64,000 bases of DNA from Octopus sinensis (Eukaryota). Under the pieces are notes generated by a model. The model was not told the origin of the DNA and ran no database searches. It saw only the letters and a list, made by a program, of their open reading frames with translations. Position numbers and translations under genes: made by a program. The stretch lies in contig NC_043014.1 in the NCBI RefSeq assembly GCF_006345805.1, positions 46,996,001-47,060,000 of the forward strand, read 5' to 3'. Shown here piece by piece: positions 8,555 through 63,012 of this stretch; within the stretch, counting starts at the first letter, position 1; each line of letters begins with the position of its first letter.

Positions 8555-8607
<53 letters not shown>

Positions 8608-8799
8608 AGCGTACCAATACTTTAAATGTATATTTGATTAGTTTGTAGATGTCAGTTTCATTTTTTTTTTATTGACTTTCCCTTGTATTTGTAATTCACT
8701 TACCAACTACAATTCATCTCCAATATTTTTATAGCCTTAACAGTACAATACATAGTCTCTCTCTCTCTCTCTCTCTCTCACTCTATCTGTATATACATA

Positions 8800-8834
<35 letters not shown>

Positions 8835-11800: not shown

Positions 11801-14800
11801 ACCATAGAATTGTGGTGAAGTATTGATGCACTGGGGTGAGGTACCATAGAATTATGGTGGGGTACCATACAGTTGTGGTGAGTATTGTAGAGCCTTCTTG
11901 CAGAACCAAGGACACTGTAAAACTGTGACGAGATGCCGAAAGGCTGATGGAGTACCATTGAAATGTGGTGGGATACATCAGCTTCTGTAGAAGTGTGGTG
12001 AGGAACACAATCTCTCATGTAGGAGAATGCATATATATGGAGACATGTAGGATAGTATAGCAACACTAAAAGTATAAGATGAACTAGTTGTGAAATTTGT
12101 AATTATGTTACTTACAATATGTTCTGTTATCATAGTAAACATTATTATTCCAGTGGTTTCCACCAACTAACCTTTATTCTTACTTCCACAGGTGGATCAG
12201 CAACCTAAATTTGAAGCCAGTGTGTATTATTATTTTTATTTTGTATTGTTCATCATTTTTGGCTCCTTTTTTGTGTTGAATCTTGTCATCGGCGTTATTA
12301 TTGATAAATTTAGCTTCCTTAAGAAAAAGGTAAGTAAACTTACAGATTTCTTGAATTTAATTCTTCCTCTTTGTATTATCTAGTTAAATTTATACCCCTA
12401 AGTACTAGAACTTTCGGATCTTTTCGGTTTGAATGGCAGTTTTTAACATAATTTCTAGGTAACTAAAAAATTTTAAACTTCCTATACTGGTAGAATGTGT
12501 TTATAAAACATCTTTTTCTCTTGGCTTTATTGAGAAAATTCTATAGTTTGTAAAATATTTGTGGTTTTTTTTTTTTTCAATTTCTGCAATTTCAACCAAT
12601 CAGTGAAGTCCATTGAGGTAAACAACATTCTGTGCCGTATGAATATGTCCCTCGTTTAAGAAACAGATTGGGTTTATTTACATTTGTGAAGAAAAAAAGA
12701 TACCATCCCCCCCACCCCTAACCCTAACCCTAAAATAGATTGAAATGCAATAGATCATAATTATGGGTGACATAATTATGGGTGACAATTTCATATGGCA
12801 CCGCTAGAAAAAACTGCCGTTCAAACCGAAAAGATCCGAACTTTCATCATATATAGAAAAGTGGCCATTTCAGTAATTCTATAGCTAAAGAATGACATTG
12901 CTAGTAACCAGCTCACACTATAAAGTCTATGTGAGAGATTATTGCAGTTAAAAATAGAGGTTAGTGATTCTTTAAAATAGTTAGTGAACTAGAGTGATCT
13001 GTTGTTAAGTGTTTAACTGATGTGGTAGTCTCATGTAAAATAGAGTAGATAGAGAGACATAGATTCTGAAAAACTAACTGGTTTTTATTACTATCTCTGA
13101 AAAACAAATTTCCTTTTATTTACTACCTCTGTTTTTTTCTACTTGCAGTACGATGGAACATATTTAGACATGTTTCTTACACCAACTCAGCAAAACTACT
13201 ATAATACATTAAAAAAGTTGGGTACCAAAAAACCTCAAAAGACTGTCAGAAAACCAAAGGTAAGTCAAAAAATTGTTTTCTCTTCAGTTTTCCATTTTAG
13301 AGTTGTTCCACTGATTTTGGTCGTTGTGGGTATTTACAGATGAACTATGCACTTTTATGCAGTCTGATAAGGTGTTGACACTCAAATCTTTACCACAAAC
13401 AGAGTAACTCAAACAAGATTTGAATCTAACGATTCAGTTTCAATATATTTTTTTCTTGTCAAACAGTTTTCAGTTGGCCAGTTTATTCATAACATTGTTA
13501 TAGCAGGGAATTTATTACCTTGTTTGATATTTTACTCTTTAACAAATTATCTTTCTAAAGTCAACACCTATAGCAAAGATATGAGCAGGGAAGGAAGTAT
13601 AGAGATATGACATTCTGGTAATGAAAGAAGGGTTGGACACAATATGGGAGTTGAGAAGGGAGACAAATGAGTTAAGAATGCCTATGTGGAGAGATAGCTT
13701 GAACCCAACAAGCCCTAAAGAGATCATTATAGTACAATAAATATGAGTGAGAGAGGGGGTGGCACACCTGTAATCAAGAGGATGGACTATGTCTGTGACT
13801 TTATGCTAATCAGCCAAATGGCTTTTCTCTGGATGCAGTCAAGGATGTCTGTGTCTTCGGTAGTAGTACTATCCCAGGTGTAAGACCAGAACTCCACTGT
13901 GAGCCTCACCTGATCTTTGTAGAGTCTCAATAATTGTTGGGGAATTATAAGGGCAGCAAGCTGGCTGAATCGTTAGCACACCAGGCAAAATGCTTAGCGG
14001 TATTTCGTCTGCCATTACATTCTGAGTTCAAATTCCACCAAGGTCGACTTTGCCTTTCATCCTTTCGGGGTCAATTAAATAAGTACCAGTTACACACTGG
14101 AGTTGATGTAATTGACTTAAACCCTTTGTTTGTCCCCTCTATGTTTAGCCCCCTGTGGGCAATAAAGAAATAAATAATTGTTGGGGAATGAAGTATCTTT
14201 TGGTCCTAAAAATAGGGCCTGTCTTTTGGATGCAGCCCTAAATATGTTAAGACTATACTTTCACCAGGAGAGATCTTCGAGCATAATGAGAGCTAACGTT
14301 TGGAGCAATTGTTAGGGATCTAGTTGAGAGCTGCTCGTGAATAAAGAGGAGAATAATATTTAATATAATAAATTTATTTTACTTAGCAGTATTGATGTGA
14401 AGTTGCTGTCATCTGTTATTTCTCTGAGAGTCGTGAAATATAGCACCAGTAGAATTTGAATTTGACTTATAAGAAACTACTTATAACATCCTTCCAATTT
14501 AATCTGGTTCTGTGCAACTCTCACAGTTTGCTTAGGGTCATAAAGTTAGCCTTATTAAATCAAATTGAATTTATACAACTCCAACATTTATTCAGCTGTA
14601 GTGAAGAGATTATAAGCATGTAATCTAATGCAAGACAGGGCACTAATGGCCTGTGTGTGCTTTGAAATCTGTCTAATAACATAAACAAACAATATCTAAC
14701 TCTTCTGATAGCCTTTCTATTATTTTCCTACACCTTGTCCTGATTTTTCCATGTTTTGTTTCATATTATTTTTTTTTCTTCTTCACACAGAACAAATGCC

Positions 14801-16759: not shown

Positions 16760-17070
16760 CTACTACTGTTAATTATTGTTATTGTTATTATTACTATTAT
16801 TATTACAATTATTATTATTATTACAATTATTATTATTATTATTATTATTATTTCTTCCTTCCACTTATTTCTTCCTATCTATGAATACTACCTGGAACCA
16901 TACAAGGAAGATTTAACTAAGAAGTAATAATGGACATTATCCCAATTAATTCAGATTTTAAAACTTATAGAAAAATACATCATTATTATTATTATTATTA
17001 CTCTTACCATTATTATTATTATTATTATTATTATTCTTACCATTATTATTATTATTATTATTATTATTAT
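16760..17070. repeat. (ATT)n/(TAT)n tracts in probable Nav2 3'UTR
   Basis: Two tracts at ~16770-16850 and ~16980-17070. Confidence 0.8.
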
Positions 17071-19442
17071 CAAATATTAATTGTTCTACTAATTTTAATG
17101 ATATTCATTCAACATTGTTAAAAGGGAAAAAATTGTAAGATTTTTCAAATTATTTTCTTTATCATTTAATCTTTCTAAACTTACAAATTCTTCAACTTTT
17201 TCTCTGCTTGTCATTTCTGTATGACAGAGACAAGTGACTTTAAAATGCTACAAAACTACTGCCTTCCATAAGTTTTTTTTTCTCATTACTATCAATCTTT
17301 CACTTTTCCATTTGCTACTAGCATGATAAAATTGCAACTGTCTCCATGCAAGATTTGAAATAATAGTAACTTAAGGAAACTATTATCTAATCTTAACTCA
17401 ATTTCAACATTTCAAAACCACTGGGAAATAACAAGACTCTTTCTTCACACATTACATGTTACCAGGCTGATTTTGTAATATTGAACTTTGTTTTCAGGTA
17501 AGAGGCACCGTCAGGGAGAAAAAAAAAAACTATAAAACAATGGTGAAAAGCAGGAGAGACTGAAACAGGATCTCTTGTCTGTCTTTTCTATCTCTCTCTG
17601 CCACACAAAAACCCACACAACATGACAATGTTTTGGATATTATGCTAGAGTTTATTCTAAATGTTATCAGAATGTCTCAAAATTCTATTTTATTCAAGGC
17701 CAGCATGACTATTTTCTTTCTAATGTTGATCAATTGCAGATCTGCTCATATCCTACCTACATCTCTCTCACTAATACACTTAATCAACACCTCTCTTTTT
17801 CCCTCTCCTTCTCTCTTCCTCTCCTTGTCTCTCTCCCTCTCTCTTTCTCCCCTTCTCTCTCCCTCTCTCTTCTTTCCCTCTCTCTTTCTAACATATGGAC
17901 AACAGCAAATTTGAAACAAAAATAGTCCACAGCAATTTCAGTGGTCCTCAGTTTTGGCCCCAAGAATTGAAGAAGTTTATGCCGAGATGAACAATTGGCT
18001 AAGGAGAGAAGCCACAGGATGTTTCCAGCCAGATTATTACTTCATATGTTGCTCGTAAGCAATGTCTAAATATCTTCGTTATCTTTTCTCTCTCTAATAA
18101 ACAATACAGTAATTTTTTAATATTTATCAAACATATTTTACTAATTATAACCTCTTTTCAATTTACATAAAATAGGAGTGTGTATCACATACACACACAA
18201 TTATTTATTATGGACGCTAGCACTGATATAAGAGAAAGAGTTAAAGCATAACGGTGGCAGCCCGAATCACTACCACCAACTTACCTCAGCAGCTTCAGGG
18301 CTGCAATGTAGCTTACTCTCTGTTAATTTGACAATCTAGAACCTCTTTCTTCACATTATTTATATATAACTACTTCCAAATGTGGAACTAAGCACATTTA
18401 TGAATGCACTAGTCCTGATTAAACTATATTTTATTCTTACAAATAAAACACTTAAATTACCATTGTACCTTCTGCGAGAGAACAAAAACCTCCATCAAAC
18501 AACAGCATCAGACAATAGCTTACTGATTAAATTGATCTCAGGTATTTGCTGATTGCTGACATCAAGCCATAACACTAATTAATAAGATGTATTGTAACTG
18601 AAATAATTACGTTACAGGATTAATTAGTTTATAACAGAGATAGACCCATTCTTTGTGGAAGAGCGGGACCTACCTCTAAAACCATCTCACCCTTTCTACA
18701 ACAATCACTACATGATTTCTGATTAAATCACAACTGAAAGTAAACTGGAAGCAAACCTGGCTAGCTGAAACTCCATTTTATTGTCTATATACACCCTATA
18801 TAGACCCTTTTAAAACAGTGCAAAGGTTGGTGCAAGTACCACCTTGTGGGAAACTTTCCAATTTAACATCTGTTCTTGTTTGACTACTTGTATCATATTA
18901 GAAGCTATGTATAAATGTAAGCACTGTGTTACACACATACATACATGCACACACACACAGACACATACATACACACACACCAGCTGTGTTAGTGTCGCCC
19001 CTTGGTGCTACTGGTCTACACTATCAACCGGAATATAAGTCAACTGTGCACTCTTAATTCAGCCGTCTTCTTTCATGTTATCTTTTCTTTTCACTTCAGC
19101 AGTTTGTCACTTGTCTTAACTCACTTAGATTAATACCTAATCCATACGTATTTGTGATTAGATTAACCCTTCTTTAGCTGATTTGATGCTCCATTAACAG
19201 AACCTACCCCTCTAGCTAATTCACATTATTTACAGCTGCAAGTTACCCAATTTCAAAACTTTTTTCTTCATTCTCTGCAGCAATATTTCCAATGAATTCT
19301 TTGACCTTTTGACATGCTTTTATGTTTGTACAAACATCTCCAGCAGTGTTCTCCTGGAAATACTACCTTTGCAATACTGTTGATATTCTTACATTATTTT
19401 CTGCTGACATTTTATCTCAGCAGCTTTCCCTCCCACACACAC

Positions 19443-39274: not shown

Positions 39275-39780
39275 GATAACTCTTATTTACATGAGAATGT
39301 TGAGGCTTCTGTAATGTAAAAGGGAGGTAATTCCTTTTCAGAACTCACACTGAGGTATGCAAGGGAGATAACTTAAGTATTTAAGCAAGCGACGATAATT
39401 CTACAAAGGTGTTCGTTGCATTTTGGAAAAATAATAGGCTCGAATTTAGTCACAAGGCTAGCAGTTTTAGTGTAAGGAACTTAGTCGATAGCATCGACTC
39501 CAATTCTTGGCTGATATACTATTTTTCGGAAGGATGAAACACAAAGTTGACTTCGGCGGGATTTGAGCGCAGAACGCAACGAACTGGAAGAAACACTACT
39601 AAATGGCTCACGGTCTTGAATAGTGGAAGCTGTCGCGTGAAGAGGACTACACTTGCTCTAGATCTGAACTCAAGGCGTACACCTCCACACACAAATGTTT
39701 CATTTATACAAATGTCAGAAATAATCAATTAAAATATGAAAATTACATTGTGATAAACACTCCACAGAGACGAAACTATA

Positions 39781-40198
39781 TATTTCTTAATTGCCCACAA
39801 GGGGCTAAACATAGGGGGGACAAACAAAGACAGACAAAGGGATTAAGTCGATTACATCGACCCCAGTGCGTAACTGGTACTTAATTCATCGATCCCGAAA
39901 GGATGAAAGGCAAAGTCGACCTCGGCGGAATTTGAACTCAGAACGTAACGGCAGACGAAATACCTATTTCTTTATTACCCACAAGGGGCTAAACATAGAG
40001 GGGACAAACAAAGACAGACAAAGGGATTATGTCGATTACATCGACCCCAGTGCGTAATTGGTTCTTAATTCATCGACCCCGAAAGGATGAAAGGCAAAGT
40101 GGACCTCGGCGGAATTTGAACCCAGAACGTAACGGCAGACGAAATACCGCAAAGCATTTCGCCCGGCGCGCTAACGTTTTCTGCCAGCTCGCCGCCTT
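39781..40198 (-). mobile_element. SINE family D dimer (full copy + headless copy) within a single TSD
   Basis: 17-bp TSD acagagacgaaactata at 39764-80 and 40199-215. Confidence 0.85.
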
Positions 40199-40381
40199 AC
40201 AGAGACGAAACTATAGCAAATGGTGATTTAGGTCTTTGGGAAAGGCATGAGCATCACAACAGAGAGATCACTTTTAGAGAGACTTAGTAATTTTAATATT
40301 TCTATTATTGAAAACAAGTGGATGTATTCCACCGAAGCTAGGTAAATAAAACCTTTGAACAGAGATTGTCGGAAGCGACAC

Positions 40382-40453
40382 CTACTGGTTTGGCTACGCT
40401 GCATTGAAAAGGGGCAATACCCCGAAACGCGTCTGTAGCTGCCGGCCAAGTAG
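40382..40453 (+). ncRNA. Type I hammerhead ribozyme motif, U3/A8 core variant (copy 1; predicted cleavage after GUC at 40433)
   Basis: GCUGCA-UUGAAAA-GGGG(CAAUA)CCCC-GAAA-CGCGU-C-UGUAGC: stem I 40398-403/40434-439, stem II 40411-423, palindromic stem III ACGCGU; stem I extends via CUACU-GG-UUUGGC / GCCGGCCAAGUAG. Paired by eye. Confidence 0.8.
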
Positions 40454-40967
40454 TGTGGAGCGACTGACCTCCCTTGTTCAAAGGTTATATGGATACAGTT
40501 TGTGTATCAAATAGCTAACTTAAGGCGATGGCCTCATGGAGCTAATAAGCGGTCAGCTTTTTTCTTATTTTTATAAGAATGCCATATTAGTATGGCGATA
40601 AATAATATTTTCCGGGAACGCTGCCGTTGTTCTCTTTTAGAGAGACTTAGTAATTTTAATATTTCTATTATTGAAAACAAGTGGATGTATTCCACCGAAG
40701 CTAGGTAAATAAAACCTTTGAACAGAGATTGTCGGAAGCGACACCTACTGATTTTTCCTTGGATTACGTCGGATTATTTTACGCTGTAAGCTGTTATGTT
40801 AGTTCGTTCTGTTCTGGATTTACACGTACAATTTTTGGAGTATTAACTTGTGAAACAAAGTAATTTTCGCCCTTCGGGGTAGAAAATTCCTTTTTATATA
40901 TGAACTTTAATTCAGTGTGGATTTAATTTTTATCTTGTCTCTTGTGACAAGTCACTTGCATTTTATT

Positions 40968-42449
40968 ATGGATCTTGACTTAACGTCAAATTCTGATTTT
41001 CCCGAGATGGGAGAAGTTATAAAGCAAAAGGATACAAAGGAGAAACAAAGTTTTTCGGAAGCCGTTGGAGGCAATGTTATAGAACTGGAAGTAACAATGG
41101 AGGATCTCTTCAAGTTCAGAAAGTTCATACAAAGGAATGGAGAAGAAGAAACGAGAATAATACCGCCCCCTGACACCTTACAAGCAATCCGTGAGAAGAC
41201 GGTAATTTATAAGGTATATAATATTAAGGAAAAAAAGATTGCAGATGTAAGAAATGAATTGGTAGAACGGTGCATGGCACCAATTTGGAACAAGGTTCGC
41301 TATGTTGGCCGAGGAGTGAGAAGCGCTACTATTGAAGCGCATTTCGAGTCGGCTAGCATAGCGAAGGAAATTTCAACTCAAACGTTGAAGAGTGCAGACA
41401 TCCTGTTGCTGCCCACGTACTTAGGGCGCAGAACAGCTAAGATAACAATAGAGGATATACCAACAGGTTACGATGTAATGTGGGCAGCAACAGCGGTCGT
41501 ATTCGACGTAGAAGAGAAATTAAACATTTTAAACATGAGGATGAAAGAGGCAAAATTTTGGAAAGGTCAGCAGCTTGAAATGATCGTTCAAGCTGACAAT
41601 GCAACGCTGGAGAGTTTGCCAGACAGGGTCTTCGTGGGGGATGGACACACTGCGCGGGTATCGGTTGAGGGACGTAGGCCCAGATGTTTCAAATGTGGGC
41701 AGAAGGGTCACGTCCGCTCAGAGTGCAAAAAGAAAAAACCCGTTAATGCCCCCATTCAAACCGCTGTGGAGAACAAAGCAGACATCACAGCAACAACAAA
41801 AGAGAATACCCGGAAAAAGCAAAATGAAAGTCAAAAGGAGGAAAAGAAAATGAATGGAAAACAAAGCGAAAACGAAAACGAGGTGGAAAATAATTTATCA
41901 AATGGAAAAGAACTGGAAGTAATGGAATATACGACCGTAACCAACAAAAGGAAGAAATCCAATACCCCGGACTCCCCACCCCAAACAAAAAGAAAAACAA
42001 ACGCAGAACAACACAAAAAAATTATCCAATCCCACCCCGCTGGCACTACTTTTGTAGGCCAGCATTTCATTAAACCCCAGCCCCCAACTTTAAAAGGATT
42101 CAAAAAAACCGATAGGTGCATTGCTTATAACACAAAAAACGAGAGAGTAGTTTGGTACATAAAGGCGAAACCAAACATAAAATGTTTCAAACCATCGGAA
42201 AAAAACCCGGATTGGAGGTATGCGAAGGTTGGAGAGGAGGAATGGAAGGAGAGACTCTTCCAACTACACGTGAGGGACAACCTGATTAAAGATGTCACAC
42301 AAGAGGTGATAGCTGGAAAATTGAATATTAGCCCGGCAGCCACTCCATCCCAGAGCCCGGTGGCAACGCCGGTTAAATGCCCAGCAACAACGGAGAGTGT
42401 GGGGGAAGCAGGCAGACAAAAGCTGCCATGCTCCCTCTCACAACCGTAA
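40968..42449 (+). CDS. Tx1-like ORF1p (nucleic-acid-binding protein, 493 aa from first ATG)
   Basis: Open frame; CFKCGQKGHVRSEC zinc knuckle followed by a K/E/N-rich low-complexity region; 24-nt spacer to ORF2. Confidence 0.88.
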   Translation: MDLDLTSNSDFPEMGEVIKQKDTKEKQSFSEAVGGNVIELEVTMEDLFKFRKFIQRNGEEETRIIPPPDTLQAIREKTVIYKVYNIKEKKIADVRNELVERCMAPIWNKVRYVGRGVRSATIEAHFESASIAKEISTQTLKSADILLLPTYLGRRTAKITIEDIPTGYDVMWAATAVVFDVEEKLNILNMRMKEAKFWKGQQLEMIVQADNATLESLPDRVFVGDGHTARVSVEGRRPRCFKCGQKGHVRSECKKKKPVNAPIQTAVENKADITATTKENTRKKQNESQKEEKKMNGKQSENENEVENNLSNGKELEVMEYTTVTNKRKKSNTPDSPPQTKRKTNAEQHKKIIQSHPAGTTFVGQHFIKPQPPTLKGFKKTDRCIAYNTKNERVVWYIKAKPNIKCFKPSEKNPDWRYAKVGEEEWKERLFQLHVRDNLIKDVTQEVIAGKLNISPAATPSQSPVATPVKCPATTESVGEAGRQKLPCSLSQP

Positions 42450-42473
42450 GTAACAAACTTTCTTCATTCATCG

Positions 42474-45400
42474 ATGATTAAGTTGGGCTGTATAAATGTG
42501 CGTGGAATGGGGTCGAAATGGAAACAGGCTTGCTTGCTGGACGACCTCAGGACACACAGAATAGATGTAGCCATTGTCACCGAGTCCAAGATGAGAGGAA
42601 CCCAAGCGTTCTCGCATCTTCTCAATGGTTACGAGAAATTTATTTCTCCTAGCCGAGGAGGAAGTGCAGGCGTGGCAGTCCTTATCAGGAAGAACTTGGA
42701 CTTACAGGTAAGTACTGTCTTTATGGACCCAGAAGGTAGGCTGGTTGTCCTCGATGTAACTCACGTAAGTAAGCAGTCCTTCAGGTTGGTAGCTGTTTAT
42801 GCTCCTAATGAGGGTAGGCAGACTGGTTTTTATCGGAACTTGGAGCACTTTCTAGTGACGTCTAAAACGGTAGTATTGGTAGGGGATTTCAACACTATCA
42901 TCGATGCGCGGATAGATAGTGTGGGCTCGTCTGATAGAAGGGGGAATCCTTGCCTTAAGGGTCTACTGACGAGCTTTAATCTAGTAGATCGGTTTCGAAT
43001 GGATGAGCCGAGCATTCCACAGTGGACGTGGAGTAACAATGACGGCTCACGCAGATCGTATATAGATAGGGTATTTGTTAAAGAACGAGATAGGAATAGC
43101 ATTAGCTGTCCACAATTTTGTATTGTGCCTTACACGGATCACAAATTAGTGACGTGTGAGGTACATGTAGAGAAATGCCATAGACAGGGACCCGGATACT
43201 GGAAAATGAACAAGTCTATTTTGGCTTGTGAAGCTTTCCGTAACCGGATTATGGAATTAGTCCAGAGGGCATTATGTGGAACCATCATTAATAATAGATG
43301 GTGGATCGCCCTCAAAAGAGCCATCCGTTTGGAGTCCATTAGATTTAGCAACCAGCTAAGTTTAGATAGGACTAGAATAGAGGGCGATTTAGTTAAGAAC
43401 TTAGACGAGGCAATGGGATCTGGCTGTGCATCTAGAGTGTTAGCAGAGAGAACGATCTTGTACCGTCACCTCAATGCCAAGCATGAAGGATGTAGAGTCA
43501 GAGCTAAGCTACGTGCAGTGAAACGAGAAGGTATTAATGTTGCCGGATGGGCACGTCGTGTGGAGAGTCAGAAGGGCAAAAAGTCCTCTATTAAGTCTTT
43601 AACTGACGAACAGGGACGCAAAATCTATGGACAGGAGGAGATACAGAAGGTCTTTCAACAGCATTTCGCTCGGTTGTTTGGGGAGGGCGATCCACTCGAG
43701 CGAGGGGAGGACTTACAGAACTTCCTAGCTGGTGGGCCTCGGCTCTCGCCAAGCAGAGCGGAACGCTGTGAAGGACCGATTACTCCCGCGGAGGTAAGAG
43801 GGGTTTTGGCTGAATGCGCCCGGGAAAAGTCGCCGGGACTGGATGGTCTGCCCTATGAGTTTTATTGTTGTATGCCGGACTTGTTCGGGGACATACTGGC
43901 AAGCGTCTACGCAAACTGGCAACAGAATGGGAGGATTCCCAGTTCTGTGAGCCGGGGAGTTGTGACGCTGATCCAGAAAGACCCGAGCAAGGGGGATAAT
44001 ATTAGTAATTATAGGCCCATAACTCTACTTAATGTAGAGTTAAAGATTTTGGCCAAGGTGTTAGCAGAAAGGTTGAAGGTCGTCATGGAAAAACTTGTCG
44101 GAAAGGCACAGACATGTGCAATCCCAGGCAGGTCGATCGAAGATAATCTTCACCTTCTACGCTACACTATAGACAGGGTTGGGCAATTAGCCGGCAAAGG
44201 AGGGGCATTGGTCCATTTAGACCAAAGTAAAGCATTTGATAGGGTAGATCATCAGTACCTGGCGACGGTTCTCGAAGCGGCTGGGCTAGGTCCTGACTTT
44301 CGCGGGTGGATATCAGCTATGTACAGCGGTATCAAGTCCACAGTCCAGATAAACGGTTACTTAACGGAACCGTTTTCGATTAAGCGTTCAGTTCGTCAAG
44401 GATGTCCCTTGTCCCCTCTCCTGTACGTTTTGGCTCTTGAGCCATTGCTGCGGAAGTTGGAGACGGTGAGATGCAATCCTAATGAAATCGGATGCGGTAA
44501 GTCTGTTTCTGCGTATGCGGATGACGTCACCTTCATCGTGTCCAACGAAGCACAACTAACTCGTGTAGAAGGTGCTCTCCGAAGATACGAAGCGGTGGCT
44601 GGGGCAAAAGTTAACAAGGACAAGTCCACTGGTTTGCGCCTCGGCACCTGGAGGAACAAGCCGATATCGTCCAGTGTTGTTGGACACTGGACAGATGGTC
44701 CTGTTAAATTGCTTGGAGTTTGGTTTGGTTCAGACTCCCAGACGGAGAGAAAAATTGGAGCGAGGTAGTGACCAAGGTAGAAGCCATAGTTCGGGAGTGG
44801 TTCGGAAGGCATCTTTCCTTGAAAGGGAGGGCGGAGGTGGTACAGGTGTTTATAGCATCTGTAATCACCTATCGCCTGACTGTCGTGCCTTGCCCCGATT
44901 TGTGGCTAAGCAAGTTGGATCGACTCCTTTTCCGCTTTTTGTGGAAGGGAGGAAAGCCACTTGTAAGGCGCTCCGTGTGTTGCCAGGAACCACTAAAGGG
45001 TGGGCTGGGGATGCCTTGGTTAATGATGCGCAGGCATGCGCTGAGACTGAGACATCTCTGGTTTCACCTGGAAGGTGATAAGGTGTGGAGTCCGCTGGCA
45101 GATAATTTCTTCCCGCAACCGGACTCTATGGAGAGATTTAAACCCGGTTTCATTAAAAGACGGAACCTGACTTTATGGCAGAAAGAGTGCCGACAGGCAC
45201 TCTGGCTGATCCACAAGATAGGCAAAGCCGGCTGCGGGAATACCACCTCGACATTTTATAGAAGGATGGTAGAGGCAAAAAATGACGACGTCCTAAGAGG
45301 GGCTCTGGGGTTCGATGAGGATCAACTATCCGACCTGTTTAAGAAGACTTTCAAGCCGGGGTATTTGGACAATTACCAAAAATCCCTGACTTGGCAGTGC

Positions 45401-45874
45401 TATAGGAATGCTCTACCTGTTCGCGATAAGTTATATAGGCATGGAATGTCAGTGCCACCGACATGTCCAAGATGTGGGTTGGACGATGAAACCGTCCAGC
45501 ACGCTTTTGTACATTGTCAGGAGCTGTCAGGCTTAATAAGTTACGTAGAACACGTGTTGTCGCATCTGGGACGAGTACAGCTATCGGCTGGTTCTATAAT
45601 AAAGATGATACCGCCAGCTGGACTCTCAAAGGAAGGTGAGGCTTGTTTTCACTGTACGGTGGCAGTACTGAAAGAGTGTGTGTGGAGAACTAGATTGGAA
45701 GGTTTGGTGTCAGGAACCTTTGTCTCTGGATATGGTATGTTAAAATACTTCAGATACCATCTAAAGAGCAAGATGGATTTAGAGAAGAGGAACCTGACAC
45801 AGAAAAAGTATGTGAATCGATGGAAGGATGTGATAAAAAAGGTGGGTGTGAGTAACCCTGCTTGGTCATCATGA
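42474..45874 (+). CDS. Tx1-like ORF2p (AP endonuclease, reverse transcriptase, C-terminal zinc finger); one 2-nt frameshift near 44749
   Basis: Motifs INVRG, VTESK, VYAPN, GDFN, RSYIDR, TDHK (APE); KSPGLDG, YRPITLLN, KAFDRV, RQGCPLSP, YADD (RT); CPRCGLDDETVQHAFVHC. Track ORFs 42474-44768 and 44720-45874 join if an extra GA is removed (would give 1132 aa). Confidence 0.9.
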
Positions 45875-46127
45875 AGGGAGAAAATAGTCTCTGGGCTCTT
45901 AGGCTGTCGGGTAAGAATCCTGACTGTGATATACCTAGCTGGCCAAAATCATTTTTAATTTTAAAAAAAAAGGAGAAAAGTAAAGTCTAGTATCATAATC
46001 AATAATCAACATATGTAAATATCAAACGAACAACGTAAACTTTTTGTAATTATGTTTTGTATTGTAATGTACTATCTCTGTAAGATTTTTATAATCATAA
46101 TAAAGATTTAGGAAGCGACACCTACTG

Positions 46128-49100
46128 ATTTTTCCTTGGATTACGTCGGATTATTTTACGCTGTAAGCTGTTATGTTAGTTCGTTCTGTTCTGGATTTAC
46201 ACGTACAATTTTTGGAGTATTAACTTGTGAAACAAAGTAATTTTCGCCCTTCGGGGTAGAAAATTTCTTTTTATATATGAACTTTAATTCAGTGTGGATT
46301 TGATTTTTATCTTGTCTCTTGTGACAAGTCACTTGCGTTTTATTATGGATCTTGACTTAACGTCAAATTCTGATTTTCCCGAGATGGGAGAAGTTATAAA
46401 GCAAAAGGATACAAAGGAGAAACAAAGTTTTTCGGAAGCCGTTGGAGGTAATGTTATAGAACTGGAAGTAACAATGGAGGATCTCTTCAAGTTCAGAAAG
46501 TTCATACAAAGGAATGGAGAAGAAACGAGAATAATACCGCCCCCTGACACCTTACAAGCAATCCGTGAGAAGACGGTAATTTATAAGGTATATAATATTA
46601 AGGAAAAAAAGATTGCAGATGTAAGAAATGAATTGGTAGAACGGTGCATGGCACCAATTTGGAACAAGGTTCGCTATGTTGGCCGAGGAGTGAGAAGCGC
46701 TACTATTGAAGCGCATTTCGAGTCGGCTAGCATAGCGAAGGAAATTTCAACTCAAACGTTGAAGAGTGCAGACATCCTGTTGCTGCCCACGTACTTAGGG
46801 CGCAGAACAGCTAAGATAACAATAGAGGATATACCAACAGGTTACGATGTAATGTGGGCTGCAACAGCGGTCGTATTCGACGTAGAAGAGAAATTAAACA
46901 TTTTAAACATGAGGATGAAAGAGGCAAAATTTTGGAATGGTCAGCAGCTTGAAATGATCGTTCAAGCTGACAATGCAACGCTGGAGAGTTTGCCAGACAG
47001 GGTCTTCGTGGGGGATGGACACACTGCGCGGGTATCGGTTGAGGGCGTAGGCCCAGATGTTTCAAATGTGGGCAGAGGGTCACGTCCGCTCAGAGTGCAA
47101 AAAGAAAAAAAAACCCGTTAATGCCCCCATTCAAACCGCTGTGGAGAACAAAGCAGACATCACAGCAACAACAAAAGAGAATACCCGGAAAAAAGCAAAT
47201 GAAAGTCAAAAGGAGGAAAAGAAAATGAATGGAAAACAAAGCGAAAACGAAAACGAGGTGGAAGATATTTTATCAAATGGAAAAGAACTGGAAGTAATGG
47301 AATATACGACTGTAACCAACAAAAGGAAGAAATCCAATACCCCGGACTCCCCACCCCAAACAAAAAGAAAAACAAACGCAGAAGAACAACACAAAAAATT
47401 ATCCAATCCCACCCGCTGGCACTACTTTTGTAGGCCAGCATTTCATTAAAACCCAGCCCCCAACTTTAAAAGGATTCAAAAAAACCGATAGGTGCATTGC
47501 TTATAACACAAAAAACGAGAGAGTAGTTTGGTACATAAAGGCGAAACCAAACATAAAATGTTTCAAATCATCGGAAAAAAAAACCGGATTGGAGGTATGC
47601 GAAGGTTGGAGAGGAGGAATGGAAGGAGAGACTCTTCCAACTACACGTGAGGGACAACCTGATTAAAGATGTCACACAAGAGGTGATAGCTGGAAAATTG
47701 AATATTAGCCCGGCAGCCACTCCATCCCAGAGCCCGGTGGCAACGCCGGTTAAATGCCCAGCAACAACGGAGAGTGTGGGGGAGGCAGGCAGACAAAAGC
47801 TGCCATGCTCCCTCTCACAACGTAAGTAACAAACTTTCTTCATTCATCGATGATTAAGTTGGGCTGTATAAATGTGCGTGGAATGGGGTCGAAATGGAAA
47901 CAGGCTTGCTTGCTGGACGACCTCAGGACACACAGAATAGATGTAGCCATTGTCACCGAGTCCAAGATGAGAGGAACCCAAGCGTTCTCGCATCTTCTCA
48001 ATGGTTACGAGAAATTTATTTCTCCTAGCCGAGGAGGAAGTGCAGGCGTGGCAGTCCTTATCAGGAAGAACTTGGACTTACAGGTAAGTACTGTCTTTAT
48101 GGACCCAGAAGGTAGGCTGGTTGTCTTCGATGTAACTCACGTAAGTAAGCAGTCCTTCAGGTTGGTAGCTGTTTATGCTCCTAATGAGGGTAGGCAGCAG
48201 ACTGGTTTTTATCGGAACTGGAGAGCACTTTCTAGTGACGTCTAAAACGGTAGTATTGGTAGGGGATTTCAACACTATCATCGATGCGCGGATAGATAGT
48301 GTGGGCTCGTCTAATAGAAGGGGGAATCCTTGCCTTAAGGGTCTACTGACGAGCTTTAATCTAGTAGATCGGTTTCGAATGGATGAGCCGAACATTCCAC
48401 AGTGGACGTGGAGTAACAATGACGGCTCACGCAGATCGTATATAGATAGGGTATTTGTTAAAGAACGAGATAGGAATAGCATTAGCTGTCCACAATTTTG
48501 TATTGTGCCTTACACGGATCACAAATTAGTGAGTGTGACGTGTGAGGTAGAGAAATGCCATAGACAGGGACCCGGATACTGGAAAATGAACAAGTCTATT
48601 TTGGCTTGTGAAGCTTTCCGTAACCGGATTATGGAATTAGTCCAGAGGGCATTATGTGGAACCATCATTAATAATAGATGGTGGATCGCCCTCAAAAGAG
48701 CCATCCGTTTGGAGTCCATTAGATTTAGCAACCAGCTAAGTTTAGATAGGACTAGAATAGAGGGCGATTTAGTTAAGAACTTAGACGAGGCAATGGATCT
48801 GGCTGTGCATCTAGAGTGTTAGCAGAGAGAACGATCTTGTACCGTCACCTCAATGCCAAGCATGAAGGATGTAGAGTCAGAGCTAAGCTACGTGCAGTGA
48901 AACGAGAAGGTATTAATGTTGCCGGATGGGCACGTCGTGTGGAGAGTCAGAAGGGCAAAAAGTCCTCTATTAAGTCTTTAACTGACGAACAGGGACGCAA
49001 AATCTATGGACAGGAGGAGATACAGAAGGTCTTTCAACAGCATTCGCTCGGTTGTTTGGGGAGGGCGATCCACTCGAGCGAGGGGAGGGCTTACAGAACT

Positions 49101-51479
49101 TCCTAGCTGGTGGGCCTCGGCTCTCGCCAAGCAGAGCGGAACGCTGTGAAGGACCGATTACTCCCGCGGAGGTAAGAGGGGTTTTGGCTGAATGCGCCCG
49201 GGAAAAGTCGCCGGGACTGGATGGTCTGCCCTATGAGTTTTATTGTTGTATGCCGGACTTGTTCGGGGACATACTGGCAAGCGTCTACGCAAACTGGCAA
49301 CAGAATGGGAGGATTCCCAGTTCTGTGAGCCGGGGAGTTGTGACGCTGATCCAGAAAGACCCGCAAGGAGGATAATATTAGTAATTATAGGCCCATAACT
49401 CTACTTAATGTAGAGTTAAAGATTTTGGCCAAGGTGTTAGCAGAAAGGTTGAAGGTCGTCATGGAAAAACTTGTCGGAAAGGCACAGACATGTGCAATCC
49501 CAGGCAGGTCGATCGAAGATAATCTCACACCTTCTACGCTACACTATAGACAGGGTTGGGCAATTAGCCGGCAAAGGAGGGGCATTGGTCCATTTAGACC
49601 AAAGTAAAGCATTTGATAGGGTAGATCATCAGTACCTGGCGGCGGTTCTCGAAGCGGCTGGGCTAGGTCCTGACTTTCGCGGGTGGATATCAGCTATGTA
49701 CAGCGGTATCAAGTCCACAGTCCAGATAAACGGTTACTTAACGGAACCGTTTTCGATTAAGCGTTCAGTTCGTCAAGGATGTCCCTTGTCCCCTCTCCTG
49801 TACGTTTTGGCTCTTGAGCCATTGCTGCGGAAGTTGAGACGGTGAGATGCAATCCTAATGAAATCGGATGCGGTAAGTCTGTTTCTGCGTATGCGGATGA
49901 CGTCACCTTCATCGTGTCCAACGAAGCACAACTAACTCGTGTAGAAAGTGCTCTCCGAAGATACGAAGCGGTGGCTGGGGCAAAAGTTAACAAGGACAAG
50001 TCCACTGTTTGCGCCTCGGCACCTGGAGGAACAAGCCGATATCGTCCAGTGTTGTTGGACACTGGACAGATGGTCCTGTTAAATTGCTTGGAGTTTGGTT
50101 TGGTTCAGACTCCCAGATGGAGAAAAATTGGAGCGAGGTAGTGACCAAGGTAGAAGCCATAGTTCGGGAGTGGTCCGGAAGGCATCTTTCCTTGAAAGGG
50201 AGGGCGGAGTGGTACAGGTGTTTATAGCATCTATAATCACCTATCGCCTGACTGTCGTGCCTTGCCCCGATTTGTGGCTAAGCAAGTTGGATCGACTCCT
50301 TTTCCGCTTTTGTGGAAGGGAGGAAAGCCACTTGTAAGGCGCTCCGTGTGTTGCCAGGAACCACTAAAGGGTGGGCTGGGGATGCCTTGGTTAATGATGC
50401 GCAGGCATGCGCTGAGACTGAGACATCTCTGGTTTCACCTGGAAGGTGATAAGGTTGTGGAGTCCGCTGGCAGATAATTTCTTCCCGCAACCGACTCTAT
50501 GGAGAGATTTAAACCCGGTTTCATTAAAAGACGGACCTGACTTTATGGCAGAAAGAGTGCCGACAGGCACTCTGGCTGATCCACAAGATAGGCAAAGCCG
50601 GCTGCGGGAATACCACCTCGACATTTTATAGAAGGATGGTAGAGGCAAAAAATGACGACGTCCTAAGAGGGTCTCTGGGGTTCGATGAGGATCAACTATC
50701 CGACCTGTTTAAGAAGACTTTCAAGCCGGGGTATTTGGACAATTACCAAAAATCCCTGACTTGGCAGTGCTATAGGAATGCTCTACCTGTTCGCGATAAG
50801 TTTATAGGCATGGAATGTCAGTGCCACCGACATGTCCAAGATGTGGGTTGGACGATGAAACCGTCCAGCACGCTTTTGTACATTGTCAGGAGCTGTCAGG
50901 CTTAATAAGTTACGTAGAACACGTGTTGTCGCATCTGGGACGAGTACAGCTATCGGCTGGTTCTATAATAAAGATGATACCGCCAGCTGGACTCTCAAAG
51001 GAAGGTGAGGCTTGTTTTCACTGTACGGTGGCAGTACTGAAAGAGTGTGTGTGGAGAACTAGATTGGAAGGTTTGGTGTCAGGAACCTTTGTCTCTGGAT
51101 ATGGTATGTTAAAATACTTCAGATACCATCTAAAGAGCAAGATGGATTTAGAGAAGAGGAACCTGACACAGAAAAAGTATGTGAATCGATGGAAGGATGT
51201 GATAAAAAAGGTGGGTGTGAGTAACCCTGCTTGGTCATCATGAAGGGAGAAAATAGTCTCTGGGCTCTTAGGCTGTCGGGTAAGAATCCTGACTGTGATA
51301 TACCTAGCTGGCCAAAATCATTTTTAATTTTAAAAAAAAAAAGGAGAAAAGTAAAGTCTAGTATCATAATCAATAATCAACATATGTAATATCAAACGAA
51401 CAACGTAAACTTTTTGTAATTATGTTTTGTATTGTAATGTACTATCTCTGTAGATTTTTATAATCATAATAAAGATTTA
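46128..51479 (+). mobile_element. Second full-length Tx1-like L1 copy in tandem (5352 bp), ORFs broken by many small indels
   Basis: Near-identical to 40751-46110 end to end; followed by third copy of the 17-bp site (51480-51496); several substitutions versus copy 1 plus 1-2-nt indels, often in homopolymers. Confidence 0.9.
46345..51243 (+). pseudogene. Frameshifted ORF1/ORF2 of Tx1-like copy 2 (some indels may be sequencing errors)
   Basis: Track fragments 46294-47121, 47057-47449, 47850-48245, 48175-48822, 49052-49375, 49471-49845, 50815-51243 each match parts of copy 1 proteins. Confidence 0.75.
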
Positions 51480-51490
51480 GGAAGCGACAC

Positions 51491-51563
51491 CTACTGGTTT
51501 GGCTACGCTGCATTGAAAAGGGGCAATACCCCGAAACGCGTCTGTAGCTGCTGCCGCCAGTAG
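51491..51563 (+). ncRNA. Type I hammerhead ribozyme motif, U3/A8 variant (copy 2; predicted cleavage after 51542)
   Basis: Identical core and stems I-III to copy 1; its first 6 nt come from the LINE target-site duplication; distal stem I 3' arm slightly varied (ctgccgccagtag). Confidence 0.75.
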
Positions 51564-51720
51564 TGTGGAGCGACTGACCTCCCTTGTTCAAAGGTTATAT
51601 GGATACAGTTTGTGTATCAAATAGCTAACTTAAGGCGATGGCCTCATGGAGCTAATAAGCGTCAGCTTTTTTTTCTTATTTTTATAAGAATGCCATATTA
51701 GTATGGCGATAATAATATTT

Positions 51721-51764
<44 letters not shown>

Positions 51765-51860: not shown

Positions 51861-51930
51861 TAATCATTATTGATCAGAAATATTTTTTTAAAACTGCTAG
51901 TTTTCCATTGACTACTTGGGTGTTTTGTGC

Positions 51931-51986
51931 ATGCGTGCGTGCGTCCGTACTTGCGTGCGTGCGTGCGTGCGTGCGTGCGTCCGTAC

Positions 51987-52023
<37 letters not shown>

Positions 52024-52080
52024 TACTTGCGTGCGTGCTTGCGTACTTGCGTGCGTGCTTGCGTACTTGCGTGCGTGCAT
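51931..52080. repeat. (GCGT)n tetranucleotide array with interspersed GTACTT units
   Basis: Visible directly. Confidence 0.9.
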
Positions 52081-52540
52081 GCCAGCGCACGTTTCCTGCA
52101 CATATACATACATGAATACACACATAAACTAAGACATTAATTGGACCGTCCTCTCCTCCTCCTCCTCCTCCTCCTATCACATCCACTGTATTCCTGCCCA
52201 AAAGGGACGTAAGGGACTGTCAGTTCTGTGATTCAGTCTAGCATTTTACGAACAACGGAGTTTCATCACAGACCATCCATTTCAGGTGTGTCTCTGTTGA
52301 TATCAACAAAATGAAGGCTAAGAAATTCTGAGGGTAAGTGGAAGACCGTTGTACAGAAGAAATAAGCTGAGTGTTTCAGCTTCAGGACAGAAGTTGGTGT
52401 TGTCCCGAGATGATCTATCGTCTGACGACTGCCCGACCATGGAAACCCAAGTCTATCTCTCACCTACAGCACACATCTATGGTCTCGTGATTACCAGAGA
52501 AAGTTCTCTCTAACTTTCCTTACTTGTTTAAAGGACAAAA

Positions 52541-52800
52541 TTCGTGGCGGCGGCGGCGGTGGTGGTGGTGGCGGTGGTGGTGGTGGTGGTGGTAGAAGTG
52601 ATGGTGGTGGTGGTGGTAGTGATGATGGTGGTGGTGGTGATAGTGATAATGGTGGTGGTGGTCGTCGTCGTCGTGGTAACGGCAGCGATGATAATCATGG
52701 TGATGTGGATATGATAGCAGTGATTTTGGTGGTAGTAATGATGGTGGTGGTGGTGGTCGTCGTCGTCGTCGTCTTCGTGGTCATGACAGTGATAAGGACC
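52541..52800. repeat. Compound (GGT)/(GAT)/(CGT) trinucleotide tract
   Basis: Visible directly. Confidence 0.85.
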
Positions 52801-52960
52801 ATGACAATGATGATGACTCTAGTGACAGAACCATGGTTATTGCAGGAATGACCAGGATTTGTTTGTAGTACTTCAGTAGACAACTAACCCTAAGAACTTC
52901 GCTATTCAGATAACAAATGTCTCTGAAGAAAAACAAAAAGCAACCAATAACGTATCTGGT

Positions 52961-56639: not shown

Positions 56640-57123
56640 CTATGTCAGGTCTGTCATCACAATGCTTGTCAGGCTTGTCATCACAATGTGATGTCTATGA
56701 CGTGTTTGTCATCACAATGTGATGTTTCTATCAGATTTGTCATCATTATGTGATGACTATGATATGTTTGTCATCATGATAGGATGTCTTTCCCATGTTT
56801 GTCATCACAATGTGACATGTCAGGTTTGTCATCACAATGTGATGTCTATGACATGTTTGTCATCACAATGTGATGTCTATGTCATGTTTGTCATCACGAT
56901 GTGATGTTTCTGTCAGATTTGTCATCACAATGTGATGACTATGACATGCTTGTCATCATGATGGGATATCTTTGCCATGTTTGTCATCACAATGTGACAT
57001 CTATGTCAGGTTTGTCATCACAACGTGATGTCTATGTCATGTTTGTCATCACAATACAATGTCTATGTCAGTTTTGTCATCACAATGTGATGTCTATGAC
57101 ATATTTGTCAGGTTTGTCATCAC
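56640..57123. repeat. ~31-bp palindromic minisatellite, 16 monomers, 182-bp higher-order period
   Basis: Unit gtttgtcatcacaatgtgatgtctatgtcat; variant monomers recur at 56721 and 56903. Confidence 0.85.
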
Positions 57124-62292: not shown

Positions 62293-63012
62293 TTAACCCT
62301 TTCATTACCAACCCCGCTGAAACCGACTCTCGCTCTGAGTACAAATGTCTTGTTTCCATAAGTTTTGAATTAAAATCTTCCACCAAACCTAAGTCACAAT
62401 TTATGTTCCTAACACTAGCTGAATGATATCTAAGTTATTTTACTCAATTCTTTGTTATATTTAAAATTAATTGAAAAAAACACAGAGCATCTCAAAATAA
62501 ATATAGTAATGAAAGGGTTAAAATATATAATAGAGAAATAATTCTTAACCCTTTTAATACCAACCCGGCTGAAACCGACTCTCGCTCTGAGTACAAATGT
62601 CTTGTTTCCATAAGTTTTGAATTAAAATCTTCCACCAAACCTAAGTCACAATTTATGTTCCTAACACTAGCTGAATGATATCTAAGTTATTTTACTCAAT
62701 TCTTTGTTACATCTAAAATAATTGAAAAAAACACAGAGCATCTCAAAATAAATATAGTAATGAAAGGGTTAAAATATATAATAGAGAAACAATTCTTAAC
62801 CCTTTTAATACCAACCCAGCTGAAACCACCTCTGGCTCTGTAGTACAAATGTCTTGTTTTCATAAGTTTTGAATTAAAATCTTCCTCCAAATGTTAGTCA
62901 CAATTTATGTTCCTAACACTAGCTGAATGATAACTAAGTTATTTTACTCAATTCTTTGTTATATTTAAAGTAATTGAAAGAAACACAGAGCATCTCAAAA
63001 TGAATGCAGTAA
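62293..63012. repeat. Tandem array of a piggyBac-like MITE (~252-bp period, ~2.9 units)
   Basis: TTAA|CCCTTTCATTAC...GTAATGAAAGGG|TTAA at 62297-62517 and 62549-62768; third unit from 62800 is diverged and lacks the right TIR; 23-bp spacer repeated. Confidence 0.8.

Follow-up and report, generated by a model that had tools for sequence, protein, structure and literature searches.

We analyzed a 64,000-nucleotide stretch of octopus DNA (NC_043014.1, positions 46,996,001 to 47,060,000 of the forward strand; referred to here as the window), in which two long interspersed nuclear elements (LINEs) lie one behind the other inside a single unit of a 363-bp repeat that carries a motif resembling the hammerhead ribozyme. 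Both LINEs are full length and precisely flanked by copies of the same short target sequence, an intact paralogous unit next to them preserves the empty site, and at a second, non-orthologous locus a LINE of the same family has inserted at the same site, again with the same orientation. We consider it likely that we are dealing with a sequence-specific octopod LINE of the L1/Tx1 group that integrates by target-primed reverse transcription (TPRT) at a defined site in the hammerhead-like repeat. Very probably, this LINE lineage homes to hammerhead-ribozyme-like repeats.

The locus is organized around a 17-bp sequence, GGAAGCGACACCTACTG, for which we found four exact matches in the whole window, all on the plus strand (40371, 40734, 46111, and 51480). 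Allowing up to two mismatches gave no additional match in the window, the chance expectation being 0.01. From 40734 to 51496 the order is 17-mer, 5360-bp LINE, 17-mer, 5352-bp LINE, 17-mer. The copies at 40734–40750, 46111–46127 (between both LINEs), and 51480–51496 are the target-site duplications (TSDs), while the match at 40371–40387 is the uninterrupted target in repeat unit 1. This unit (40268–40630) is 363 bp long, non-coding, and has a GC content of 40.8%. The left part of unit 2 (40631–40750) is identical to unit 1 at 119 of 120 positions, and its right part (51497–51724) runs out into a (TA)n/(CA)n microsatellite; joined over one 17-mer, these outer flanks give unit 2 of the repeat. 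In total the window holds about 1.96 units, with no further occurrence in the 64 kb. The alternation of TSD and LINE with an exact 17-mer, which an original prediction made from the letters of the window had proposed, is hence real, as confirmed by the exact-match scan and by end-to-end alignment. All features described here lie on the plus strand unless noted otherwise.

Copy 1 of the LINE spans 40751–46110. It ends without a poly(A) tail and has AATAAA at 46099–46104, which is 7–12 nt before the end of the element. Copy 2 spans 46128–51479, and its reading frames are broken repeatedly, mainly by 1-bp deletions that are private to it. The first open reading frame, ORF1 (40968–42449), encodes 493 aa counted from the ATG and contains one CCHC zinc knuckle (Pfam zf-CCHC); beyond zinc knuckles nothing matched, and we obtained no match to the mammalian L1 ORF1p. 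ORF2 is split by a 2-bp difference near 44745 that is private to copy 1. Its N-terminal 764 aa (42474–44768) comprise an endonuclease of the apurinic/apyrimidinic (APE) type and a reverse transcriptase (RT), and its C-terminal part, with a zf-RVT domain (Pfam), lies in a different frame (44720–45874). The Pfam matches in ORF2 are Exo_endo_phos (1.5e-14), RVT_1 (5e-33), and zf-RVT (6.7e-11). The APE motifs CINVRG, TESKM, GDFN, SYIDRV, and TDHKLV can be read in the translation, as can the RT motif YADD, and ORF2 is colinear with the human L1 ORF2p (E=3e-55).

Judged by its sequence, the element is a LINE of the L1/Tx1 group: ORF2 has the endonuclease before the RT, it carries the C-terminal zinc-binding domain, and ORF1 is separate. 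Traits of the Tx1 type are found as well, with n=2 independent loci: the element prefers a target sequence, its TSD is long, and its tandem inserts share a TSD. The earlier designation as Tx1-like holds in so far as ORF2 belongs to the L1 group by its domains and its colinearity with the human protein; beyond this, the assignment is weaker than had been stated. L1-Tx1 families are reported to be active in O. vulgaris (PMC13282606). We also considered that the LINE could be part of a Penelope-like element (PLE) and rejected this, the endonuclease being APE and not GIY-YIG.

Insertion site at a second locus

A search of the protein collection with ORF1 gave a single match, Octopus sinensis LOC115216432, as its one close homologue. 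The second locus, L001, belongs to the O. sinensis chromosome CM016868.1 and contains a full-length LINE at 7747–13272, which shares 84% nucleotide identity over 5 kb with the LINE of the window and 86–89% aa identity in ORF2. The analysis counts the window and L001 as two octopus species; the document header gives Octopus sinensis as the source of the window. On both sides of the L001 LINE, at 7729–7746 and 13273–13290, lies a perfect 18-bp TSD, TTTCATCGCTACCTGGTG, and the flanks form a partial tandem repeat of 357 bp with about 1.3 units. We rejected orthology of the two loci, because the flanks of the window share with L001 only scattered similarity of the dispersed short interspersed nuclear element (SINE) type.

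When the two repeats were aligned, anchored on the insertion point, they proved to be 56% identical, with a score of 67 versus -26 +/- 15 for shuffles, and the best-conserved block between them is the hammerhead-like core. The insertion points coincide (window ...GCGACACCTACTG|GTTTGG, L001 ...TCGCTACCTGGTG|GTTACC), and the orientation of the LINE relative to the repeat is the same. Within each locus the TSD copies are 100% identical, while the TSDs of the window and of L001 are only about half identical to each other, showing that the insertions are recent and independent and not one inherited event.

One could still imagine that a LINE without any specificity landed in the repeat by chance, or that one ancestral composite of repeat and LINE was inherited or mobilized as a whole. 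Such explanations can draw on the fact that there are two loci only, but we hold their probability to be close to negligible. The L001 insert sits at the homologous site, in the same orientation, and at a non-orthologous locus, and no other such repeat is present in the ~190 kb of fetched DNA, so that a chance match of family, position, and orientation would be very improbable. One old shared insertion is ruled out by TSDs that are perfect within a locus in targets that are ~45% different between loci, and a composite does not fit with LINEs that are 84% identical in repeats that are only 56% identical. The original prediction had named insertions in unrelated flanks as the outcome that would speak against it. 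The one other reachable copy is instead found at the homologous position of the repeat, which makes two loci.

For the sequence-specific integration that we favor, the following mechanism can be proposed. By TPRT, the LINE would integrate into the ~360-bp non-coding, partially tandem repeat at the DNA for the 5' strand of distal helix I, 11–16 nt upstream of the core and in the orientation of the ribozyme. Two nicks staggered by 17–18 bp would give rise to the TSD. The determinant would most likely be protein recognition of the local DNA sequence, and around the top-strand nick the window and L001 have CGNNACCTNNTG|GTT in common. We infer that the endonuclease or ORF2p reads the target sequence, and the order of the nicks is part of the same proposal. 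The TSD and the untouched downstream sequence would then rebuild the site 3' of the insert, where a second copy could land; such sequential landing would furnish the observed series of TSD-LINE-TSD-LINE-TSD.

A likeness of the LINE 3' end, AAAGATTTA, to the target upstream of the TSD, AGAGATTGTC, was dismissed as a coincidence, as it is absent at L001. At the other end of the element, the comparison of both loci brought out a 30-nt block in the 5' untranslated region (UTR) that forms an 11-bp hairpin with a UUCG loop (40859–40888 and 46236–46265 in the window, 7873–7902 at L001). It is 100% identical between the window and L001, while the UTR around it is only ~65% conserved, and the hairpin has z = -2.4. 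The block may be a protein-binding or promoter element; a conserved 28-nt block of this UTR gave no exact match in GTDB genomes or IMG/VR.

The host repeat and its hammerhead-like motif

The host repeat, and not the LINE, resembles the metazoan retrozymes and the hammerheads in the pseudo-long terminal repeats (pLTRs) of PLEs (PMC7229834, PMC4209133, bioRxiv 10.64898/2026.07.22.740005). Metazoan retrozyme repeats are 170–400 nt long with a GC content of <50% (PMC7229834). With units of 363 bp in the window and 357 bp at L001, 41% GC, no ORF, a partial tandem arrangement, and one hammerhead-like type I motif per unit, the octopus repeat shows all of these features. Different from the metazoan retrozymes and PLEs, there are only 1.3–2 units per locus, and the repeat does not end at the predicted cleavage site. 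At the upstream end of the L001 repeat lies a 61-nt inverted repeat (7491–7613; 93% complementary, 1-nt spacer), and an inverted truncated copy in this position is a further likeness to PLE inserts (PMC8557442). That the LINE itself brought the hammerhead along by 3' transduction was rejected, because the flanks rebuild a full unit (~200 bp upstream and >220 bp downstream of the insert) and because an intact repeat unit is adjacent.

The motif was placed by manual and descriptor fit at 40398–40439 in unit 1 and, in complete form, at 51507–51548 in unit 2, where cleavage is predicted after C51542. It consists of helix I GCUGCA/UGUAGC, the core UUGAAAA, helix II GGGG-CAAUA-CCCC, GAAA, helix III A-[CGCG]-U, and C17. 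In unit 1, U3 is at 40404, A8 at 40409, and C17 at 40433, after which cleavage is predicted; the extended distal helix I reaches from about 40378 to 40458. The motif at L001 reads CGCCCG / UUGACGA / GGGA-CAACCA-UCCC / GAAA / A-[CUGG]-U / U17 / CGAGCG, and its helix III with loop, ACUGGU, is self-complementary with G.U. For comparison, the canonical metazoan type I hammerhead has a helix I of 6 bp, a helix II of 4 bp, and a helix III of 1–2 bp with a small palindromic loop, and it acts as a dimer (Cervera and de la Pena, PMC4209133); the architecture of metazoan and PLE hammerheads is also described in PMC7229834. The host-repeat motif shares with these a helix I of 6 bp, a helix II of 4 bp, a helix III of 1 bp with a palindromic loop, and the U3-A8 pair. 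In PLE repeats, U3-A8 is a natural covariation of the C3-G8 core pair (PMC4209133). The window has U3-A8 at this position, and O. sinensis L001 has the U3.G8 wobble intermediate. RNAalifold on window and L001, two distinct sequences, returned exactly helix I with 6 bp and helix II with 4 bp, in which five of the ten pairs are compensatory and one is broken. Across the fetched DNA (~190 kb), a relaxed type I descriptor has three matches only, at 40404 and 51513 in the window and at 13302 of L001, with ~0.003 matches expected per random 64 kb. In the minimum free energy folds, helix I is long and is accompanied by the helix II hairpin; the 17-mer contributes its last bases to the predicted pairing of distal helix I, in agreement with what had been noticed earlier.

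Several points weigh against site-specific integration into a hammerhead-like repeat. Site specificity is read from only two independent loci (three inserts). From the top-strand nick to U3 there are 16 nt in the window and 11 nt at L001, which argues that the ribozyme itself is not the ruler and that the site follows the local sequence; the bottom-strand nick contexts of the window and L001 are not obviously conserved. Relatives at 44–48% aa identity use other targets without a hammerhead. As for the motif, the type I consensus has the core C3 U4 G5 A6 N7 G8 A9, G12 A13 A14, A15.1-U16.1, and H17, of which all positions are present save C3, which is U at both loci, and G8, which is A in the window and G at L001. 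The Rfam hammerhead models (Hammerhead_1 and relatives) gave no match at the gathering score or at E<=10 in four nested stretches (64 kb, 611 nt, 251 nt, and the 54-nt core), and the matches that were obtained are weak and unrelated only (RT-2, sR55, sroC, DUF3577). The relaxed descriptor was written after the motif had been seen. Finally, minimal hammerheads of the PLE type show poor cleavage in vitro (PMC4209133).

On balance, we regard the target, from its sequence features, as a hammerhead-variant repeat of the retrozyme or PLE type. Its ribozyme is a predicted one, and any activity would probably be weak or dimer-dependent. The central idea of the original prediction, that the LINE targets a hammerhead or retrozyme-type repeat, is thereby kept in part: the site holds at L001, while the identity of the motif and the multicopy nature of the repeat, of which about two units were seen in the window and about 1.3 at L001, are weaker than stated. 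The motif fits the published U3-A8 variant and shows covariation, but it matches no Rfam hammerhead model.

Relatives and their targets

In Argonauta hians, relatives at 48% aa identity fall into two LINE subfamilies that are mutually 70% identical. Both end in GGCTAATAAAGAA, which is followed by (ATCT)n. At the A. hians locus L003, a 179-bp sequence after (ATCT)n is found at 10787–10965 and again at 16896–17074, with 98.9% identity, which makes this a further, separate example of specificity for a site or a microsatellite. A further family, at 44% aa identity, comes from the ENA assembly ERZ21867824. Its 18-bp TSD, GAATCCTTCATTTGTTGA, lies inside a ~450-bp tandem repeat (L010 2049–2066, L011 2071–2088); the flanks of L010 and L011 are 95–97% identical, so we counted them as one, probably one locus seen twice. 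On ctg88761c (L004/L005) this family forms head-to-tail arrays with a period of 6820 and a 24-nt spacer, and hundreds of cluster members exist. A solitary copy (L006) has a different TSD of 15 bp and no hammerhead. A descriptor scan of the fetched loci detected no hammerhead in the targets of the A. hians or the ENA-family relatives. Like the Tx1 families, the cephalopod lineage as a whole is thus specific for sites and switches between targets, and as far as seen only its octopus branch uses the hammerhead repeat.

Searches with ORF2 and RT yielded neither additional close copies from octopus nor any named Tx1 reference; nearly all matches were unnamed proteins from cephalopods or ENA. The relative L002 (62% aa) ends short of the 3' junction, and the contigs of P0016, P0055, and P0049 are too short for flanks. 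When metagenomes were scanned with a profile of the ORF2 C-terminal part, only relatives at 30–34% came up. The cuttlefish locus L009 (Acanthosepion pharaonis) is too distant for a quick placement of the junction. About 2 kb downstream of its distant LINE relative, at ~12864 on the minus strand, we noticed a canonical core of CUGAUGA / 5-bp hairpin / GAAA, which by its sequence could be a PLE-type minimal hammerhead.

The 3' ends of these relatives bear on the question of whether the LINE makes use of the ribozyme. One may speculate that RNA running past the weak 3' end of the LINE is cut by the regenerated downstream hammerhead and that the target-derived 3' tail then anneals at the nicked target and guides TPRT; the LINE may also depend on retrozyme transcription. 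In line with this, LINE and hammerhead-like motif are co-oriented at both loci, the TSD supplies the 5' arm and thereby completes the motif behind the insert, and the predicted cleavage at C51542 is 63 nt downstream of the end of copy 2. A poly(A) tail is missing and AATAAA is only 7–12 nt away from the LINE end in the window, in O. sinensis, in A. hians, and in the ENA family. After the start of this signal the element soon ends, with only 2–6 nt behind AATAAA in all of them (window 46099–46110, L001 13262–13272, L003 10776–10786, L004 3356–3367), so that polyadenylated transcripts must run into the target. Cotranscription with the target is cited in PMC4494074 as strengthening R2-type specificity. 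On the other hand, relatives with an alike 3' end home to targets that are free of hammerheads, showing that the lineage does not need the ribozyme, and helix III is minimal, so that cleavage would probably require the RNA to contain another such motif (PMC4209133, PMC7229834). Ribozyme-assisted homing thus appears rather improbable to us. If the ribozyme did process LINE read-through RNA, mobile elements would cooperate with or parasitize one another in a new way: one selfish element would use the self-cleaving RNA of another for 3'-end processing and homing.

Origin of the tandem and known site-specific elements

The two LINE copies in the window are 98.7% identical from end to end, with 30 substitutions, 31 short indels, and identical termini. 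We polarized their differences with the O. sinensis L001 copy as outgroup, which was feasible for 56 of them. Private to copy 2 are 45 (21 substitutions and 24 indels), and the rest, seven substitutions and four indels, are private to copy 1. The indels of copy 2 are mostly 1-bp deletions outside homopolymers. An indel-to-substitution ratio of ~1, as found in copy 2, is not what natural decay looks like and points to long-read sequence that was left unpolished. From positions 46128 to 51724, which is copy 2 plus the following repeat, we counted ~25 private 1-bp deletions against copy 1, unit 1, and the outgroup, while 40268–46110 is clean; these deletions are probably due to uneven long-read polishing across the tandem duplicate. 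It had been argued before that the LINEs differ by substitutions and look like separate copies. Differences do exist, but half of them are indels, nearly all of these 1-bp deletions private to copy 2, and the argument for separate copies is weak because assembly noise accounts for the pattern more readily than natural decay does. Two insertion events are nevertheless plausible.

The same pattern raises the question of whether the second copy, or at least the many small deletions in it, arose as an artefact of the assembly and the locus holds a single LINE. The private indels of copy 2 outnumber its substitutions, the repeat segment behind it (51497–51724) has similar 1-bp deletions relative to unit 1, and such a deletion pattern is typical of poorly polished long reads. 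The junction between the copies, however, is exactly 3' end, 17-mer, 5' end without any stray flank, which a haplotig or overlap misjoin would not give, and tandem arrays are also present in a relative from an independent assembly. We consider an artefact very unlikely.

Alternatively, only one insertion was targeted and the second copy was generated by unequal exchange or replication slippage between 17-bp TSDs. Exchange between TSDs would yield exactly the observed order of target and LINE, the two copies have the same ends and an identity of 98.7%, and if the differences are mostly assembly noise, the true divergence could be very small. On the other hand, 17 bp is a very short substrate, copy 1 carries its own seven substitutions and four indels relative to copy 2 and the outgroup, and related families build longer arrays with a single spacer of TSD length. 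The accepted reading of tandems mobilized by Tx1 elements is sequential insertion as well (PMC4494074). We regard this alternative as unlikely, if less so than an artefact. Sequential insertion is the most likely origin of the tandem, since a relative forms arrays with a period of 6820 and since tandems that sandwich a TSD are documented for targeting of the Tx1 type (PMC4494074).

Families of the Tx1 clade that target other transposons, as well as TSD-sandwiching tandem inserts, have been documented (PMC4494074). Functionally nearest to the octopus LINE are Tx1L in the piggyBac-type Tx1D, the crocodilian Tx1-Mar in Mariner-N4_AMi, and Tx1-8_Crp and Tx1-4_AMi in long terminal repeat elements (PMC4494074). 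They have in common with it an ORF2 with APE and RT, a separate ORF1, a precise TSD of ~16–18 bp, a fixed site within a mobile repeat, tandem inserts around one TSD, and target switching among related families. Unlike theirs, the target of the octopus LINE is a non-coding, hammerhead-bearing repeat of the retrozyme or PLE type. Keno, Dewa, Mutsu, Kibi, and Koshi, with targets in U2 snRNA genes, tRNA arrays, 5S rDNA, and microsatellites, are Tx1-clade elements that likewise home to multicopy repeats, many of them RNA-coding, where they build tandem arrays, and for Kibi and Koshi the closer likeness is the A. hians relative adjoining (ATCT)n. Their targets are host genes or simple repeats, whereas the one described here is a selfish retroelement with a predicted self-cleaving motif. 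R2, which inserts into 28S rDNA and has its own ribozyme resembling that of hepatitis delta virus, is also a site-specific LINE linked with a self-cleaving ribozyme and with cotranscription of the target. It differs by its restriction-like endonuclease and by a ribozyme that is encoded by the element at its 5' end and processes the cotranscript; in the present case, the predicted hammerhead belongs to the target and lies 3' of the insert.

We found no literature report of a LINE that targets a hammerhead or retrozyme repeat. The case is best filed as a new target class, the hammerhead or retrozyme-type repeat, for an element whose style is already known. If the lineage keeps homing to this structural position of a fast-evolving repeat at both loci as proposed, a self-cleaving retroelement would be added to the targets of LINEs, and with LINEs that are 84% and targets that are 56% identical, one would have an example from nature of an element that tracks its target while both diverge. 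Site-specific LINEs serve as models for the choice of safe sites by retrotransposons and as starting points for programmable gene insertion; close families with switched targets could serve to map the determinants of specificity. The finding is also of interest for the biology of animal retrozymes, about whose genomic interactions little is known.

The surroundings of the locus are rich in other repeats. Directly upstream of the hammerhead repeat, at 39768–40148, a 184-bp unit is repeated 2.1 times with 93% identity within an octopus SINE-like element, whose tRNA-like head is apparently at 40142–40200 on the minus strand. Shortly downstream of the LINE locus lie a microsatellite of the (GTGC)n type (51927–52082) and a long triplet run rich in GGT/GAT (52523–52815). 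Other tandem repeats of the window are found at 56675–57110, where a 31-bp unit occurs 14 times, and at 62293–63012, where a 252-bp unit occurs 2.9 times with 94% identity.

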